Below are positions 4,155-61,800 of a DNA stretch of 64,000 bases, piece after piece (the first letter of the stretch is position 1; each line of letters starts with the position of its first letter). Location of the stretch: contig NW_026262745.1 of the NCBI RefSeq assembly GCF_021869535.1, forward strand, positions 72,726,001 through 72,790,000. The letters are read 5' to 3'. Under the pieces are notes generated by a model that ran no database searches, was not told the origin of the DNA, and saw only the letters and a list, made by a program, of their open reading frames with translations. The DNA is from Mytilus californianus. Its lineage: Eukaryota. The position numbers and the translations under genes were made by a program.

Positions 4155-15071
<10,917 letters not shown>

Positions 15072-15347: not shown

Positions 15348-17691
15348 TGATCAATCCCAATAAACCAACATCACCAACTATCATTGATCAATACCAATAA
15401 ACCAACACGACCAACTAGCATTGATCAATACCAAAAAACCAACACAACCAACTAGCTCAATGCCAATAAACCAACATAACCAACTAGCATTGATCAATTC
15501 CAATAAACCAACACCACCAACTAGCATTGATCAATACCAATAAACCAACACAACCAACTAGCATTGATCAATCCCAATAAACCAACATAACCAACTAGCA
15601 TTGATCAATTCCAATAAACCAACACCACCAACTAGCATTGATCAATTCCAATAAACCCACACAACCAACTAGCATTGATCAATACCAATAAACCAACACA
15701 ACCAACTAGCATTGATCAATCCCAATAAACCAACATAACCAACTAGCATTGATCAATTCCAATAAAATAACACAACCAACTAGGATTGATCAATGCCAAT
15801 AAACCAACATAACCAACTAGCATTGATCAATTCCAATAAACCAACACAACCAACTAGGATTGATCAATGCCAATAAACCAACACAACCAACTAGCATTGA
15901 TCAATACTAATAGACCAACACCACCAACTAGCATTGATCAATACTAATAGACCAACACAACCAACTAGCATTGATCAATACCAATAAACCAACACAACCA
16001 ACTAGCATTGATAAAAAACAATAAAGCAACACCACTAACAATCATTGATCAATGCCAATAAACCAACACCACCAACTAGCGCTGATCTATACCAATCAAC
16101 CAACACCACCAACTAGCATTGATCAATGCCAATAAACCAACACAACCAACTAGCATTGATCAATACCAATAAACCAACACAACCAACTAGCATTGATCAA
16201 TACCAATAAACCAACACCACCAACTAGCATTGATCAATACCAATAAACCAACACAATCAACTAGCATTGATCAATGATAATAAACCAACACCAGCAACTA
16301 GCATTGATCAACACCAATAAACCAACACAACCAACTTGCATTGATCAATTCCAATAAACCAACACCACCAACTTGCATTGATCCATGCCAATAAACCAAC
16401 ACAACCAACTAGCATTGATCAATACCAATAAACCCACACAACCAACTAGCATTGATCAATACCAATAAACCCACACAACCAACTAGGATTGATCAATACC
16501 AATAAACCCACACAACCAACTAGCATTGATCAATACCAATAAACCCACACAACCAACTAGCATTGATCAATACCAAAAAACCCACACAACCAACTAGCAT
16601 TGATCAATACCAATAAACCCACACAACCAACTAGGATTGATCAATACCAATAAACCCACACAACCAACTAGGATTGATCAATACCAATAAACCCACACAA
16701 CCAACTAGGATTGATCAATACCAATAAACCCACACAACCAACTAGCATTGATCAATACCAATAAACCCACACAACCACCTAGCATTGATCAATACCAATA
16801 AACCAACACCACCAAGTAGCATTGATCAATACCAATAAACCAACACAACCAACTAACATTGATCAATGATAATAAACCAACACCACCAACTAGCATTGAT
16901 CAACACCAATAAACCAACACAACCAACTTGCATTGATCAATTCCAATAAACCAACACCACCAACTTGCATTGATCCATGCCAATAAACCAACACAACCAA
17001 CTAGCATTGATCTATGCCAATAAACCAACACCACCAACTAGCATTGATCAATGCCAATAAACCAACACAACCAACTAGCATTGATCAATACCAATAAACC
17101 AACACAACCAACTAGCATTGATCAAAACCAATAAACCAACACCACCAACTAGCATTGATCAATACCAATAAACCAACACAACCAACTAACATTGATCAAT
17201 GATAATAAACCAACACCACCAACTAACATTGATCAACACCAATAAACCAACACAACCAACTAGCATTGATCAATACCAATAAACCAACACCACCAACTAG
17301 CATTGATCAATACCAATAAACCAACACAACCAACTAGCATTGATCAATGATAATAAACCAACACCACCAACTAGCATTGATCAACACCAATAAACCAACA
17401 CAACCAACTTGCATTGATCAATTCCAATAAACCAACACCACCAACTTGCATTGATCCATGCCAATAAACCAACACAACCAACTAGCATTGATCAATGATA
17501 ATAAACCAACACCACCAACTAGCATTGATCAACACCAATAAACCAACACAACCAACTTGCATTGATCAATTCCAATAAACCAACACCACCAACTTGCATT
17601 GATCCATGCCAATAAATCAACACAACCAACTAGCATTGATCCATGCCAATAAACCATTTATCAATATCAATAAACCAACACCACCAACTAG
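15348..17691. repeat. 37-bp minisatellite, about 63 units (TTGATCAATACCAATAAACCAACACAACCAACTAGCA)
   Basis: Directly visible head-to-tail array with strong C/A versus G/T strand skew. No unique spacers. Confidence 0.98.
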
Positions 17692-56100: not shown

Positions 56101-56458
56101 GTTAACTTAGGTTTCTAGATTCCCACTAAAGATAACGGATCAATTTATTGAAATATTAATCTAGGTATGATTGAACTAAACTATGATTTGTTTTAAAGAT
56201 GTATTATACACACATACGCATTAATTTTCAAATGAATACGCTACAAAGCATATTTCAAAAGCGTAGTAGATGAAATAAATTTCAAATAAAGGCAGCACGC
56301 AATGTTATAATGTAAATATCTGTGTTTATCTTTATTTGTTAACGACCATCATATTACATATAATTACAAGTATACTTTTAGCTTAATACAGTACATTCAC
56401 ATATTCCATTTAGGCTATGAAAACGTTTTGCGAGTACTTTTCAACAGTACATTGATTG

Positions 56459-58858
56459 TTAACAATACTTTTTATTACAATTTAATTGCTTCAGTGCCAA
56501 CATTTTATGTTTGAGACGTTGCCTTTCAACATGTATCAATCCTATTTGCCGTACATACCATATAATGGTGGATGTTGAAAAACAAATACCGACGAAGTTA
56601 GAATAGGACGCGTACGATATAAAGGCTAAAAGCAGTGGCGATTCAGAGAGATTTGCAACATTTTTTAGACGTAAACATGCTATCGCATTCATAATTATTA
56701 TACACTGCATGAATATAATAAATATAGACAGAATCCAATGTTTTATACTAGATTTATGTCGATAGACTCTAGTTTCCACCCAGGCGCATACTTGCTTTCT
56801 GATGCAACTGTTTCTTGAGAATATTTCTACAGTATCTAAGAAATCATATTTTCTCTTTAATACTGTTGAAATATTACACTCATCCTTTTTGATAAGAAGT
56901 ATATTTTTGTTATCAATTTTGTCGTCTGCAGATTTTGACATAATAAAATCACCAAAAACTATATTATTCAAAATACAATCTTCCAAAAAGTCTTTAGAAC
57001 AAACTACTATTATAGTGTGACTGTTTTGGATAGCTTTTGAAAAAAGCTGAAACCTAGAAATACCAGCATTAAAATCACGTTCAGGAAAGCATACCGTGTA
57101 GCCCCTGTCTTCAAGACCGGTGATATTTAAATTTTCAGTGATAAACCTATTGTCGTTTTCGGTTGATAATATCAAAACATCATATTCATAATAAAAGACG
57201 TAAGCGTTTTCATTTGCAATATTGCCAAGACACGCATCGCTCGAACTTTCTGCTTCAAAGTCTGCTAGGAAAATAATATACTTACTAATTCTTAAAATCA
57301 CGTGCTTGTCAAATTGACAAATTACATATTTACAAATTCTTAAAAGGGTAAATGCAATCAAGACTAACAGTGTTATTTCTAACATTTGTCTAAATAACAA
57401 AATTTTAGCCTCATCTAGAATATCGGACTTTTTAACGTCTTCAAATTCGTTGTATTGTTCGTAGCTTTTATTATAAATATTATATGATTCATCTGGTAGG
57501 ACAGTGAAAGTGGGTCGTAATGGCGTTGTGAAATTTTGTTTCGTTTTCGTTGTTTCATTATAGAATTCCCTTGTAATATAAATTGAATGTTTGCCAAAAG
57601 ATAGTTCAGTAGTGCAAAGAACAGCACTGACGCTTATTACTTCATCTGACCTCTTTACTACAACAGGCTTGTTAATATCGTAATTTCGCTCTAAAAGTGA
57701 TATTGCTGTTTGTAAAAACAAGAAGGAAAATAGACTGCATCCACTAAACAATCTTTCAGAATTTTTATCCAATGAACCTATGAGTGTGCTATCGATTTTA
57801 TACTCCAAATCTAATACCTCGGTTTCAAAAAAACAATGTATATGGGTAAATAACAATAATCCATTTCCAACAGGAACGTTGATATATCTTGTATTATCGG
57901 TTATTTGGGACAAAAGCATTAATGCTACCATGTAATTGATTTTGTTGTATTCTCGTCCATTGTTGTCAGGGGGAATACCAGAGACCCAAAGCTTGTATTT
58001 TCCAAAATCGTCTTTGTCGATTAGAAAAATGCTTAGAGTTTCAATGATGTAAGTTTCGTGATTTGAAAATATTTTCCTTTTGTGTGAATTTGCCAATTCT
58101 TTGCCATTGTGTGTCCATTTTGTTTTATAATTTACAATTTTATCAAATACCTTAGGCAATTCGCATTCAATTTTCACATCTTCACCGATGTATCGTTTAA
58201 ATAAACGTTTACATATTGGTAATTTCTCGCTATTTTGAAATAAGCTTTGAATCCCATCAGTGTCATATCGAATATTAAACCTCTCATCATCACTCTTTGT
58301 TTGGTTAAAATCAACAACAAACTTTGGCCTTGGTATATTGGCATCATGTACATTAACATAATTAAAAAGTAAACTCCTGAAGGTTGAATGTTTAAGAGGA
58401 TTATAAACATCACGAATGCAATATCCTAACACAGAAAAAATAATAAGCCAAAGAAACGATTGAAGAAACATTTTGTATATTTTTATCCACTTTCGTCTAA
58501 GGTCAACGATAACATTTCTCAATGAGTTATCGAAACAATTCCAAAACTCAGTCCATAATACATAAACTACAATATTTGCAAATATATTAAGTAAACTTCT
58601 CTGATTATAGATACATGCTAACCATCTTAAGGCAAATATGTTAAATAATGCCATGATTATGTACGCAATAATTTGGTGTCCAAATATCGGATGTCTCTTG
58701 TGAAAATTTAGTACAGTAATCATACAGGAAGTCCATCCAAATAATTTGATCGAAGTTGATATGTTTAAGTGAACTCTGAAGACGAACAGTTCTTCAAATG
58801 AATATAATATAAAAGGTATACACACTTGGAATATAAAACGGCCTTTTACAGACATCAT
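56459..58858 (-). CDS. Multi-pass membrane protein with Ig-like domain(s) and TIR domain (IL-1R-like), uninterrupted ORF of about 799 aa from first ATG
   Basis: 2.4-kb stop-free ORF in AT-rich DNA. Ig I-set-like GEDVKIEC...WTHNG...TLSI...DDFGKY. TIR box 1/2 YEYDVLILST...D..FI...LEDRGYTVCFPERDFNAG. Several hydrophobic helices. The true start could lie on an upstream exon. Confidence 0.9.
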   Translation of the reverse strand: MMSVKGRFIFQVCIPFILYSFEELFVFRVHLNISTSIKLFGWTSCMITVLNFHKRHPIFGHQIIAYIIMALFNIFALRWLACIYNQRSLLNIFANIVVYVLWTEFWNCFDNSLRNVIVDLRRKWIKIYKMFLQSFLWLIIFSVLGYCIRDVYNPLKHSTFRSLLFNYVNVHDANIPRPKFVVDFNQTKSDDERFNIRYDTDGIQSLFQNSEKLPICKRLFKRYIGEDVKIECELPKVFDKIVNYKTKWTHNGKELANSHKRKIFSNHETYIIETLSIFLIDKDDFGKYKLWVSGIPPDNNGREYNKINYMVALMLLSQITDNTRYINVPVGNGLLLFTHIHCFFETEVLDLEYKIDSTLIGSLDKNSERLFSGCSLFSFLFLQTAISLLERNYDINKPVVVKRSDEVISVSAVLCTTELSFGKHSIYITREFYNETTKTKQNFTTPLRPTFTVLPDESYNIYNKSYEQYNEFEDVKKSDILDEAKILLFRQMLEITLLVLIAFTLLRICKYVICQFDKHVILRISKYIIFLADFEAESSSDACLGNIANENAYVFYYEYDVLILSTENDNRFITENLNITGLEDRGYTVCFPERDFNAGISRFQLFSKAIQNSHTIIVVCSKDFLEDCILNNIVFGDFIMSKSADDKIDNKNILLIKKDECNISTVLKRKYDFLDTVEIFSRNSCIRKQVCAWVETRVYRHKSSIKHWILSIFIIFMQCIIIMNAIACLRLKNVANLSESPLLLAFISYASYSNFVGICFSTSTIIWYVRQIGLIHVERQRLKHKMLALKQLNCNKKYC

Positions 58859-61800
58859 GAACAACGTGAATACATTATTTTCATAATTTTCATAATAGTC
58901 TTCTAAGTAAAGGAGTCCTGATATTACCAAACGAATGTACTTTATAGTGACATGATCAAGACGAATTTAAGTTTAACAGGTAAATATTTTCTGACGTCTA
59001 CAATGTACATGTATACAGATAAAACACATTGTAAGTTCTATGCGAAATTGGAATGCATTATTTTCTTTATCAAAATATATAAACATATAGACAGCTGATA
59101 TTACGTTCACCAGGTCAGTTATCTAAAAAATCTTTGGTTCACGTCATTAATCAATCCATATGTTTTAGTTCTTTATGTTTATCCTTTTATTGCTAGTATT
59201 TTTTTAATCCACAGTAAACGATGGCTAGATTTAAAAAAAAATACGAATGTCATAATGTTGATTTTATAATTCAGATGTAAAAGCTGTAATTTCTGTGATG
59301 ATACTTATATGAAGCCAATATCGTATAAAAATCATTTCAAAAGGAATTGAACATGTTTACGGATATCTTGTTTTACCTCGGACCGAAAATAAGATACGTT
59401 CCGGTTAGACTCATAGACATGAATTATAATTTTATAGGTATAAATAACGATTTGGGTATCAGTAAATTACAACTTATCTAAATATTATTGTTATAAACAT
59501 ATGCACATTCATTGATCTATGATTCGCTGATATCTAAATTTGGCATTGTTCAAGTTCATGTTTTTTTTGTCTGTTAATGACATCATTTCGCCAAATCCAT
59601 TGGATGTTGGATGTGTACTGATCGATATTTTGTAATATTAAAAAGAATATTAGCTGTTTTTTCTGTGATGATAATTAAATGAAACCAATACCAATTTAAA
59701 CTCAATTCAGAATTGCACATGTTTACGGATATGTTGTTACATCATTTTCGTTATAACACCTGCGACTGAATTAAAGTAACTATGCTTTATTCTCAGCCAG
59801 GATTTTTGATATTCGTATCGTCATTTGATAAAGTCATGCTGATCATATGGTAGGTATAAATTATATAAAGGTGCACAGTTTTCATAGCTTTTAAAAATAT
59901 TTCAGTTTGAATTCGTCCTGGTTTTCGTTCTACAACCGGAAACTACTTGTAGATATATGTATTGGTCAATGATTGAATATAATGTTTTAGTCTTTGTACA
60001 ATAACGAAGCTCAGGTGTGATTATGACCTGTGTATATAGCAAATCCCAAAATACACCGTTTTGTGGTGCACCTTACAGAGGCGCAACGCACAGATTAGGT
60101 TTTTTCGTGACAATAATCTTCAAGTTCCGACCGAGTTGATAAGAGCGCCAGTAATGTAGAGGACATTTTTCTTTATTGTATTCCAAATCATAACCATTGT
60201 ACCTTTAATGTGTTCTATTTATATATTGTTAATATCAAGTTTCTGGTTCTGACATTAGATTTTGCAAAATGTCGAAATAATTAGATAAAAAGTGAAAATG
60301 CAAATCATCTTTACCTGGTTGACCCAACAATACTGTCCACATTCTAGAAAATTTGAAGGTTTTTTTTTTTATGAATAACAGGAAACGAATACAAAAGGGG
60401 AACGGTCCTTTTATATAATGAATTTACAAGTAAACCTACCTACCGTGGTGATATAAACAGATATCCATGACTGTGCGTACGACTACAGCTGTACTGTTGA
60501 TTTTACCAATTTTGATGATAACGGTGGTTTTCTTGTCCTTCTTTGGCACTGCGACCCTTGTAGTACAATAGGTATAACATGTTAATCATGACATATCTGC
60601 CGCTCCTCAGTGCATGATACCGATACCTTCACATCTCAATATTAAAAGCATAAGATATTGAGTGACTGAAAACGGATCTCTATATGTAACTAACTAAAAA
60701 TGACCAAATAACTTGGATGAAGGCATTTATGATATTAAAAGGCAGCATACGATCTTTAACACTTTGTGTTGCATCCGTACCGGTTTTATGTATGTTGGCG
60801 TTTGTTTTTGTTGCAGTTTGGTGTTTTTGTTGATGTGTTTTCCTTGTTTTAGTTCGTTTCCTGAATTTGTTTCTCTTAATCGACTTATGACTTTTGAACA
60901 GCGATTCAATTTTAGTAGGGTTCGTGTTGCTCAGTCTTTGATTTTCTTTGTTGTGTCTTGAGTATCGTTGTTTGTCGTTTTTTGTTTGTTTTTTTTTTTT
61001 CCATAATATTGTCCGTTTATTTTCGACTTATGAGTTTGAATGTCCCTTTGGTATTCTTCGTCTCTATTTGAGATCAAGCTGTTTTATTTCGCTTGTTTTA
61101 GAAAAACTTTTATAACCAACTGTATTTGTTTTCTTTCTGGTTACATATCACGTGTCGAAGTTTAAACAGAAAACTAGATGTAAGTAAAATTTGTATACAT
61201 TAAATTAACCCCAAAAAACATTTTTTTATTTACATTTACTTCATTTGACATAATATCTTCTCCTTGCGTTTATTTTGTCTGACAGTAAATATAATGGAAA
61301 TTGTTCGAAAACATAAACCAAACAAGACATCAAATGGTGCCTGTGTTAATCTTAACAAAATTGAAGATTCAGAACGATAACCAGTGTATTTCAGAATTTG
61401 AAGTAATGTGACGACAAATGAGGAAATATGGACAGAAATGTGGAATTGTTGTTATTTTAGTTAGATATTTAGTAAGAATTAACCTCACAACATCACAAGA
61501 AATCTACATGGTACGTTTAAATGGAGTTAACTGCCAAACTCAGGCCTCCACCTGGTGATATTGTGCCACCGCCAGTCTCAGACATCTATTATTCTCATTT
61601 ATGCATTCTTTCGGTTAAGAAAAAGTTATTTGCATATAGGTATGCTATTATTTTTTCATTTGAGTCGATGAAATGTTGTAGTTGTGTCGCATTTTCTTTA
61701 CAAATCGTCAAATGAAGAAAAAGCTCACAAAGGGGGGGGGGGGGACACATTATTTGCAAGATGAGGAAATTATCCCCCTTCAATGGCTTCATGCAGAGAA

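Follow-up and report, generated by a model that had tools for sequence, protein, structure and literature searches.

A predicted multi-pass Ig–TIR receptor encoded by an intronless gene of the mussel Mytilus californianus

As far as is known, animal TIR receptors, that is, the TLRs and the IL-1 receptor family, are single-pass proteins that hold their TIR domain free in the cytoplasm. With the vertebrate IL-1 receptor family (IL-1R1, IL-1RAcP, IL-18R, IL1RAPL, and SIGIRR), the mussel protein analyzed here shares Ig domains, a membrane helix, and a TIR domain with its boxes. Outside the vertebrates, the Ig–TIR combination occurs in sponge, cnidarian, amphioxus, and Aplysia 'IG-TIR' proteins. 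PMC9334734 lists it as a category, and PMC10279657 mentions sponge proteins that carry Ig domains outside the cell and a TIR inside. For such invertebrate Ig–TIR or IL-1R-like proteins, the descriptions consulted mention no extra membrane helices, five-helix module, or post-TIR anchors.

The gene lies in a 64,000-nt stretch of M. californianus DNA (the window). We read its product, with a probability of roughly 0.7, as a receptor of a mollusc family in which an IL-1-receptor-like core follows five N-terminal helices; in the mussel clade, two further helices would tether the TIR domain at its far end as well. The features are collected in Table 1.

Table 1. Features of the gene and of its predicted product (residues in ATG numbering; Hessa-type sums are rough values).
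Feature	Residues	Position	Strand	Basis
Single-exon coding sequence		56459..58858	-	799 codons + TAA, counted from ATG
TATAAA element		58941..58946	-	88 nt upstream of the first ATG
N-terminal bundle, five predicted membrane helices		58394..58849	-	Hydropathy; AlphaFold helices at pLDDT 50–60
Ig-like domain 1, I-set type	213–300	57959..58222	-	Weak Pfam I-set/Ig_3; profile; structure match
Second Ig-like beta-sandwich	305–457	57488..57946	-	AlphaFold pLDDT 75–90; tandem-Ig matches; invariant columns
Predicted central membrane helix, between ectodomain and TIR	490–514	57317..57391	-	Hydropathy; AlphaFold
Complete TIR domain, putative scaffold type	556–699	56762..57193	-	Pfam; PDB; structure; column counts
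Post-TIR helix 1	705–730	56669..56746	-	KD 2.5–2.6; Hessa-type sum -0.85; AlphaFold helix 700–735
Post-TIR helix 2	741–766	56561..56638	-	KD 1.43–1.59; Hessa-type sum 2.6; AlphaFold helix 741–797
Basic C-terminal tail, predicted cytoplasmic	767–799	56462..56560	-	8 K+R over residues 766–799
AATAAA poly(A) signal candidate		56331..56336	-	123 nt past the stop codon

The gene, its family and its expression

The coding sequence had been described as intronless in a preliminary description of this DNA, and one uninterrupted open frame bears this out. It is by far the longest ORF in the AT-rich window (the runner-up has 401 codons). At a stop frequency of 0.073 per codon, 799 open codons would arise by chance with a probability of about 6e-27, and a chance origin is excluded. 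The mechanical ORF, which starts from an upstream TTG, measures 823 aa. The residue numbers of the preliminary description were based on this TTG and ran about 24 too high, but all features were in place after subtracting 24. Orthologous ORFs comprised 800 aa (Logan contig L009) and 792 aa (the genomic M. coruscus sequence). The second ATG (58855) is probably the conserved start, because the orthologs carry it alone and not the first one. The TATAA core of the upstream element was identical across the three aligned mussel sequences, and two orthologs had ATTAAA at the position of the AATAAA. Judged from the sequence, this is an intact single-exon gene with conserved start, stop, TATA-like, and poly(A) signals.

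A recent retroposition, which had been considered earlier, is unsupported, because the members in Mya arenaria (19% identity) and M. coruscus likewise have coding sequences without introns; these were the two other members checked. The M. coruscus ortholog was collinear with the window across both flanks, and this collinearity and the conserved TATA-like box and poly(A) signal also argue against such an event. No tandem copies were found within the window.

An exhaustive protein search with a profile of residues 1–520 returned 93 representative clusters, while a word-indexed search with the same profile gave Mytilus sequences only. Where a source is named, the members belong to mussels, clams, a scallop, or a gastropod; every database member found was labeled "uncharacterized" or "TIR domain-containing protein". 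The expectation of a lineage-restricted family agreed with these results, the members being seen among molluscs only in the searches made here. The complete layout was kept in Mytilus homologs at 44–81% identity, and the N-terminal helices and the ectodomain were kept down to 19% identity in the paralogs L003 and L004. The mussel protein shares with this family alignable N-terminal helices and an alignable ectodomain, with C232, W248, C374, C415, G422, and H424 conserved. In the literature covered by our searches on Ig–TIR or IL-1R-like proteins and on multi-pass TIR proteins, which did not include the survey of Gerdol et al. (2017), this layout was undescribed. On sequence grounds, we regard the protein as a polytopic form of Ig–TIR receptor, belonging to a mollusc family without a name.

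The whole-gene dN/dS values were 0.49–0.59, and their confidence intervals excluded 1 in all three pairs. The intervals of both Ig-like domains also lay below 1, and the linker was at about 1. These values indicate purifying selection on the gene as a whole. Transcription was sampled in about 6% of one same-species RNA-seq run, where neither reads on the ORF nor joints were detected. Two short contigs of run X1, which may be an RNA run, matched positions 57631–57856 and 58004–58183 with 100% identity. Logan contigs L009 and L019 do not qualify as transcripts: a poly(A) tail is missing from both, and L009 stays collinear with the genome on either side of the ORF. The sole pile-up of reads, at 59593–59631, was outside the gene and came from a 35-nt fragment whose source is abundant elsewhere.

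The absence of reads in the sampled run would suit a gene that is silent or decaying here, i.e., a copy of a variable immune gene of the presence–absence type that was inactivated recently, with a frame still free of damage. The fairly high dN/dS (0.5–0.6 overall, with values of about 1 for the linker and for the C-terminal helices) points the same way, as does this assembly, where a truncated copy (L002) is present but the paralogs seen elsewhere in Mytilus are missing. We consider this reading improbable, since the 799-codon frame is intact, the dN/dS intervals for the whole gene, Ig1, and Ig2 stay below 1, and the start, stop, TATA, and poly(A) signals are shared with the orthologs. The two exact contigs of run X1, which lie inside the ORF only, hint at low expression.

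Ectodomain and TIR domain

AlphaFold reached a pLDDT of only 36 with a 9-sequence alignment; therefore, an alignment of 44 relatives was used. The resulting model had an overall pLDDT of 70, with 75–93 in the Ig and TIR parts and 50–75 in the helical parts.

The first Ig-like domain had been reported to lack its second Cys, and the alignment agrees: the segment DDFGKYKL (283–290) places L290 where most relatives have Cys, i.e., at the last position of the D-x-G-x-Y-x-C motif. C232 and W248 are retained. C216 and C290 almost never occur together. The family profile matched titin Ig in the PDB with an E value of 3e-22, and the Ig1 model could be superimposed on titin M1/M4 (VIA Z 10.9, rmsd 1.9–2.0). 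A second, diverged Ig-like segment had also been proposed; the beta domain found there contains both of its hallmarks, VPVGNGLLL and SFGKHSI, and carries an inserted helix at 363–389. C374 and C415 were invariant in 44 of the 44 relatives. Pfam Ig_3 was detected in 18 of these 44. Structure searches yielded tandem-Ig matches spanning residues 213–457, together with matches to the ectodomains of IL-18R alpha and IL1RAPL1. These results support two Ig-like domains, which are predicted to be extracellular. The sequons NQT185, NET434, NFT442, and NKS463 were present as had been noted.

Pfam, PDB profile, and AlphaFold structure searches all recovered the TIR domain that had been claimed. The Pfam TIR score was 23.5 bits (cut-off 21.3), and the domain was recognized in 35 of the 44 family members. 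The match to TLR15/TLR2 in the PDB improved from an E value of 8e-5 with the single protein to 2e-18 with the family profile. The best family-profile matches were TLR15/2, TLR6, and TLR1, which equaled or surpassed IL-1RAcP. In the structural comparison, VIA Z values were 17.2 for Hydra TRR-2, 16.4 for MyD88, and 15–16 for IL-1RAcP and IL-18R beta. The TIR motifs comprise YD in box 1, PERDFNAG in the BB loop, and a Trp in box 3; within them, Y559/D560, R594/D595, and W693 are conserved across the family.

The fold also matched SARM1, plant, and bacterial TIRs with Z values of 11–14. This similarity would fit an NAD-cleaving TIR effector, in which the eight helices serve as a pore or a membrane-damaging module, like bacterial TIR-plus-transmembrane defence proteins. 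To our knowledge, multi-helix membrane modules beside a TIR occur otherwise mainly in prokaryotic defence systems, which also counts for this reading. However, alignment to the TLR 'WCxYEL' motif placed N632 in the column that we take to be the catalytic Glu position of NADase TIRs. This column is unconserved in the family (N in 7, E in 6, and D in 5 of the 44 members). The best sequence and structure matches, moreover, were receptor and adaptor TIRs (TLR1/2/6/15, IL-1RAcP, MyD88, and Hydra TRR-2). An NAD-cleaving effector is therefore highly improbable, and the column counts point to a TIR of the scaffold type, without a conserved catalytic Glu.

Additional helices and predicted membrane topology

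Topology was predicted from hydropathy, the positive-inside rule, and the AlphaFold helices. A Hessa-type scale was applied without position dependence, and its values are rough.

Hydrophobic helices at the N-terminus had been noticed before, and their presence held; their number did not, as five were found instead of three or four, two of them strongly hydrophobic and three marginal. They were predicted at residues 4–26, 33–55, 62–84, 90–112, and 118–155. No signal peptide was detected in the N-terminal region, no Pfam family matched the module in any of the 44 members, and an ESM Atlas query with the N-terminal 175 residues gave no usable match. The bundle could nevertheless be aligned in paralogs at 19–20% identity, with P15, F16, and K123 invariant, and comparable hydrophobic segments were found in distant paralogs and in RefSeq proteins of Mya and Mercenaria. 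Its dN/dS was 0.42–0.62. Helix 5 follows a loop with five K/R residues, in line with the positive-inside rule, and resembles a signal anchor on the rough Hessa-type scale.

This resemblance raises the alternative that translation starts at M130, before helix 5, which would turn helix 5 into a cleaved signal peptide, the protein into an ordinary type I Ig–TIR receptor, and the 129 upstream codons into a leader. Several database models of M. coruscus and M. galloprovincialis do begin downstream, P0002 at about residue 75 and P0007 and P0008 near helix 5. Yet no stop interrupts the frame upstream of helix 5 in any of the three mussel orthologs (129 codons would stay open by chance with a probability of about 6e-5), and the N-terminal dN/dS, the invariant P15, F16, and K123, and the hydrophobic segments of the distant paralogs, Mya, and Mercenaria all speak for a translated module. 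M130 is absent from P0006, L003, and L004, and the aligned homologs and paralogs contain no conserved internal Met able to make helix 5 a signal peptide. We thus find a start at M130 improbable and retain the five-helix module.

The transmembrane segment expected between the ectodomain and the TIR was located as a hydrophobic helix with a KD of 2.18 (19-residue window) and a rough Hessa-type sum of 0.9; it lies within the AlphaFold helix 477–531. The two helices announced past the TIR, with the NLS736 sequon between them, were also recovered. No other segment of the protein is as hydrophobic as post-TIR helix 1, which begins about eight residues past the final TIR helix. It was found in all listed full-length close homologs (P0001–P0009, KD 2.36–2.83). 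Post-TIR helix 2 is moderately hydrophobic. The loop between the two contains a conserved L-S-E motif with an invariant S738. The dN/dS of the C-terminal helices was 0.9–1.2, with intervals including 1. These helices thus appear near-neutral in sequence, and any constraint would therefore act on composition and frame.

Together, these segments make up a self-consistent predicted topology of eight helices (five N-terminal, one central, and two post-TIR) with both ends in the cytoplasm. The basic tail (8 K/R) and the loop before helix 5 (5 K/R) obey the positive-inside rule, and the four sequons and the Cys pattern with C374/C415 fall in the predicted outside part. Against this prediction, the Ig2 segment 371–389 is as hydrophobic as the last C-terminal helix, and that helix, like three of the N-terminal ones, is no more than marginally hydrophobic. 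Of the proposed tethering of the TIR at both ends, the extra hydrophobic helices flanking the core stand and are conserved in relatives; that they span the membrane is a prediction.

If the core is read as above but there is no hairpin, only residues 705–730 would span the membrane, or both helices would lie on or beside it, with helix 2 and the tail forming a cytosolic amphipathic or oligomerizing element. The modest hydrophobicity of helix 2 (KD 1.4–1.6, rough Hessa-type sum 2.6) favors this arrangement, and so do the dN/dS near 1 in this region and the AlphaFold model, where residues 741–797 form a single 57-residue helix extending into the basic tail. The Pomacea-containing clade, furthermore, works with one terminal helix. 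A single span, however, would place the basic tail (8 K+R in 34 residues) outside, violating the positive-inside rule. In addition, five of the nine close homologs listed (P0001–P0009) have a second hydrophobic segment, with a KD of at least 1.6, behind the first, and the short inter-helix loop with S738 is conserved. On balance, we regard an untethered TIR as unlikely and prefer the hairpin.

As to how the doubly tethered receptor lies in the membrane, how it signals, and what its extra helices do, we infer the following. Helix 5, preceded by its K/R-rich cytoplasmic loop, would export the ectodomain, which may bind a ligand or a partner. Binding could cluster or re-orient the receptor within the membrane plane. 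With the hairpin and the basic tail behind it, the TIR would be fastened at either end to the cytoplasmic side of the membrane, and the membrane-apposed TIR domains might then assemble and recruit MyD88-type TIR adaptors, with no NAD cleavage. A bolder version, to which we give little credence, treats the Ig ectodomain, the eight-helix bundle, and the doubly tethered TIR as one machine, where rearrangement of the helices controls TIR assembly or the TIR gates a conductance, and where C-terminal anchoring of the TIR arose twice independently. If true, such a helix-controlled TIR machine would be a signalling mode without a counterpart among the known animal TIR receptors.

Comparison with known receptors

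In the ESM Atlas, clusters of the IL-1R family were nearest both by language-model features and by shape. The mussel protein has two Ig domains, whereas members of the IL-1 receptor family have three (SIGIRR has one). Unlike this family, it has no signal peptide, and it has five helices before the ectodomain and two past the TIR; its Ig1 lacks the second Cys, and its coding sequence is intronless. The prediction therefore departs from the type I pattern, where a signal peptide is cleaved off, the chain crosses the membrane once, and the TIR lies free at the C-terminus. Similarity to the vertebrate IL-1R genes was found at the domain level, and the TIR sequence is at least as close to TLR1/2/6/15. 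In structure, the TIR came closest to that of Hydra TRR-2 (24% identity, with an rmsd of 2.2 over 127 residues). Both TRR-2 and the TLRs cross the membrane once, and the mussel protein differs from them by having no leucine-rich-repeat ectodomain: no LRR family of Pfam matched it or any of the 44 relatives.

Pomacea canaliculata XP_025107061 shares the N-terminal helices, the Ig domains, the membrane helix, the TIR, and a post-TIR hydrophobic segment. In contrast to the mussel protein, Pomacea-type relatives have one terminal helix 22–42 residues past the TIR and no hairpin with a basic tail. They form a separate clade in which the Cys pair of Ig1 is retained. Post-TIR anchors thus occur in two separate, well-supported clades of the tree, as a two-helix hairpin in the mussel clade and as a single tail anchor in the Pomacea-containing one.

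With its predicted topology, the mollusc family departs from the single-pass pattern of the known receptors by setting an Ig–TM–TIR core behind a five-helix module and, in two clades, by anchoring the far end of the TIR. The innate-immune repertoire of bivalves, already very large, thereby gains a receptor class that lacks annotation. If the predicted double anchoring is true, it would limit the orientation and oligomerization of the TIR at the membrane, and the family would serve as a natural experiment on how geometry shapes TIR signalling.

Open frame and gene structure

The open reading frame, the domains and the helices that the preliminary description had reported for an intronless Ig-TIR receptor gene were all found, while its interpretation was borne out only in part. 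Residue numbering throughout starts at the first ATG; the earlier residue numbers were about 24 too high, because they were counted from an upstream TTG, from which the mechanical ORF has 823 aa. The window sequence is without any N, its G+C content is 28–37%, and the expected stop codon rate is 0.073 per codon. The chance probability of a 799-codon open frame was ~6e-27, and the runner-up in all six frames of the window had 401 codons.

Location of the gene, its relatives and other features
Feature	Sequence	Coordinates	Strand	Content
Gene under study	window	56459-58858	minus	799 open codons, then TAA
Upstream ATGs	window	58859-58900	minus	three, out of frame, between TATA-like box and start codon
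Short-contig pile-up	window	59593-59631		~35 nt at depth 130-370 from very short contigs, two runs
Amylase ORF	window	7780-8946	minus	388 aa; Pfam alpha-amylase catalytic and C-terminal domains
Minisatellite	window	15348-17656		37-bp units, 62.5 copies, 91% match
M. coruscus gene	L011 (CACVKT020004015.1)	7785-10163		genomic ORF, 792 aa
TIR-like fragments	L011	2093-2642; 15248-16046		flank the M. coruscus gene
Mya arenaria gene	L010 (CP111022.1)	6001-8244		exactly 747 codons, single exon
Truncated paralog	L002 (G000:C99:55940714-55944664)	ORF 1441-2382	minus	313-aa frame
LRR-TM-TIR frames	L006, L007 (G000:C99)	53.14-53.19 Mb		single exon, 778 and 782 aa

The coding sequence was unbroken in the window gene and in the M. 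coruscus and Mya arenaria genes. The M. coruscus locus could be aligned collinearly with the window over 59276–54806 (81% identity), and the collinearity went on beyond that stretch, so the two genes are positional orthologs. The deposited M. coruscus model (720 aa) starts 72 codons past the first ATG of the genomic frame; because that frame is the longer one, the database model is N-terminally truncated and has lost the first N-terminal helices. The Mya arenaria gene is nested, lying antisense inside the span of a gene for a 1099-aa multicopper oxidase. Intronlessness is therefore old in the family, an unnamed mollusc group of Ig-TIR receptors with N-terminal helices, and the recent retroposition that had been suggested for the window gene is unsupported.

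The window gene has a TATAAA 88 nt before its ATG, with the same TATAA core in three mussel sequences, and AATAAA/ATTAAA follows ~120 nt past the stop codon in the mussel sequences compared. Of the two ATGs in the window's ATGATG, the second alone is common to all three. The upstream ATGs make a short upstream ORF in the window; its TGA overlaps the ATGATG and is absent from L009, an ortholog-like mussel contig.

Reads sampled from a raw RNA-seq run of the same species (~6% of the run) included none on the ORF. Two exact contigs, both within the ORF, came from one small run of uncertain type, and Logan contigs of homologs were indistinguishable from genomic DNA. In the raw RNA run, the site of the short-contig pile-up was covered by reads with flanks that mismatch the window, and C>T at 59623 was present in every one of them. 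The pile-up does not belong to the TIR gene but is a piece of some repeat or transcript that is abundant and derives from another part of the genome. As to the rest of the window, the amylase ORF probably represents one large exon of a gene for alpha-amylase, and the minisatellite accounts for the GC skew of -0.59 and AT skew of +0.35 in the 16–18 kb bin.

Ig and TIR domains

The Ig domain, the second Ig-like segment and the TIR domain of the preliminary description all proved real by Pfam, a PDB profile, the AlphaFold model and structure searches. Pfam gave the TIR domain of the window protein 23.5 bits (cut-off 21.3), with weak Ig matches, and a PDB search with this sequence alone found the TLR15/TLR2 TIR (E 8e-5). 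A profile of 44 aligned relatives reached the TIRs of TLR15/2, TLR6, IL-1RAcP, TLR1, TLR3 and MyD88 (2e-18 to 5e-12), as well as titin Ig domains (3e-22). The AlphaFold model built on this alignment had a mean pLDDT of 70, with 75–93 in the Ig and TIR parts; a 9-sequence alignment yielded 36. In exhaustive structure alignments, TIR 556–696 matched Hydra TRR-2 (Z 17.2, rmsd 2.2, 127 residues), MyD88 (Z 16.4) and the IL-18R beta and IL-1RAcP TIRs (Z 15–16). Ig1 (213–321) matched titin I-set domains (Z ~10.9, rmsd 1.9–2.0), and two-domain alignments covered 213–457. Foldseek returned tandem-Ig structures, the IL-18R alpha and IL1RAPL1 ectodomains among them; the nearest ESM Atlas clusters, by features and by shape, were of the IL-1R family and serve as leads only. 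The TIR domain is complete, extending beyond the N-terminal half seen by Pfam.

Across the 44 family members, C232 was present in 42 and W248 in 43, and D284-x-G-x-Y288 was kept. The Ig domain had been described as lacking its second Cys. This is correct and a clade trait: position 290 is Leu in the mussel clade and Cys in 26/44 members. C216 alone occurred in 17 sequences, C290 alone in 24, both in 2 and neither in 1. A disulfide seems to have been swapped here, in what was probably one evolutionary event; the pattern is hence an observation rather than a statistical test.

The TIR domain keeps box 1 (Y559 33/44, D560 41/44), the BB loop (R594 35/44, D595 36/44, G599 28/44) and box 3 (W693 30/44). 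In the TLR motif "WCxYEL", the Glu stands at the position that is catalytic in NAD-cleaving TIRs; the column matching it is N632 in the window protein. Because this column is unconserved across the family, the domain may be read as a scaffold TIR, acting by TIR–TIR assembly.

Predicted topology, family and post-TIR anchors

AlphaFold placed helices at 4–26, 33–55, 62–84, 90–112, 118–155, 477–531, 700–735 and 741–797. By hydropathy and a free-energy scale whose values are rough, hydrophobicity was strong for 63–81, 130–148, 495–513 and 709–727, middling for 742–760 and marginal for 8–26, 33–51 and 88–106; marginal helices are common in multi-pass proteins. There are 5 K/R residues in the loop before helix 5 and 8 in the 34-residue C-terminal tail. 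With the positive-inside rule applied, a single self-consistent topology was predicted. The N-terminus would lie inside, followed by five helices, and the ectodomain (150–489), which carries four sequons as well as C374 and C415, both invariant, would lie outside. Helix 6 would then lead to the TIR domain inside, a two-helix hairpin and a tail inside. The NLS736 sequon in the 11-residue loop is unlikely to matter, because its Asn is unconserved in the homolog alignment. In the AlphaFold model, the final helix of the TIR domain stops at residue 697, ~8 residues from the next hydrophobic helix, compared with ~43 residues from helix 6 to the first TIR strand; from this spacing, the C-terminal tether would be the tighter of the two.

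Close homologs, including those of Mytilus coruscus and M. galloprovincialis, were 44–81% identical, the closest proteins being from Mytilus. Full-length ones keep the entire layout and all have the post-TIR hydrophobic tail; several records are without the N-terminal part. A wider search with a profile of aa 1–520, TIR left out, against 1.8 billion representatives gave 93 proteins, 28 below 1e-30; a handful were ordinary multi-Ig proteins matching the Ig1 segment only. Named members came from Mya arenaria, Mercenaria mercenaria, Mactra antiquata, the scallop Ylistrum balloti and the gastropod Pomacea canaliculata, all labelled "uncharacterized" or "hypothetical". Over the 44 aligned members, Pfam assigned TIR to 35, Ig_3 to 18 and no family to the N-terminal helices, which in the window protein matched nothing in the ESM Atlas.

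Two intronless paralogs in the same genome, L003 (782 aa) and L004 (733 aa), are 19–20% identical across the N-terminal helices and ectodomain, share the plan up to the TIR and terminate directly after it. The truncated paralog L002, reduced to the ectodomain end, membrane helix, TIR and hydrophobic tail, is likely a gene remnant, and this genome holds one full hairpin-type gene besides it. M. coruscus has at least two hairpin-type genes on one contig, and the local cluster that its ortholog forms with the flanking TIR-like fragments is absent from the window. Such copy differences would be in keeping with the turnover that is usual in gene families of this sort. The loci L006 and L007 are ordinary intronless Toll-like receptors, several of which lie within ~50 kb on contig C99; the ATG-started ORF of L006 has 641 aa.

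A 79–113-residue hydrophobic tail of the hairpin type was present in 12 mussel-clade rows of the 44, and a 22–42-residue tail with a single, very hydrophobic helix at its end in five, Pomacea included; the remaining rows, truncated records apart, end within 18 residues of the TIR. A quick maximum-likelihood search of 32 near-full-length members placed the hairpin (support 100) and tail-anchor (support 99) groups in separate clades, with anchorless lineages between. Two independent gains of a post-TIR anchor would be the simplest reading, and only that, because the tree is quick, midpoint-rooted and has several long branches; the alternative is one gain followed by losses. The earlier claim of a TIR domain tethered at both ends stands as a prediction, the post-TIR anchor recurring within the family in both clades.

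Nei–Gojobori dN/dS with bootstrap intervals was calculated for three pairs among the window gene, L009 and the M. coruscus gene. Intervals were below 1 for the whole gene (0.49–0.59), Ig1 (0.20–0.34) and Ig2 (~0.4), and included 1 in one pair for the TIR (0.35–0.76) and in two pairs for the N-terminal helices (0.42–0.62). For the two C-terminal helices (0.88–1.18) the interval included 1. The chance of 100 codons staying open is ~5e-4 per lineage, and the first post-TIR helix has a KD value of 2.36–2.83 in all listed full-length close homologs. The C-terminal helices thus keep frame and hydrophobicity while their residues change freely. The near-1 dN/dS tempers the claim of a specific hairpin function, yet does not remove it.

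Comparison with known receptors

TLRs have an LRR ectodomain; the window protein is without LRR, and a TLR identity was therefore rejected. An enzymatic TIR was likewise rejected, because the conserved Glu is missing. No description of a multi-pass Ig-TIR layout was found in the literature searched, the main bivalve TIR survey lying outside that search. In its mode of working, the window protein would most resemble IL-1R-type or invertebrate Ig-TIR receptors. Its similarity to vertebrate IL-1Rs was seen at the level of domains. IL-1R family members are single-pass, with a signal peptide and a free TIR, whereas the window protein is predicted to depart in each respect. Confirmed as an observation, with its topology predicted, it would represent a new polytopic variant among Ig-TIR receptors, from an unnamed mollusc family.
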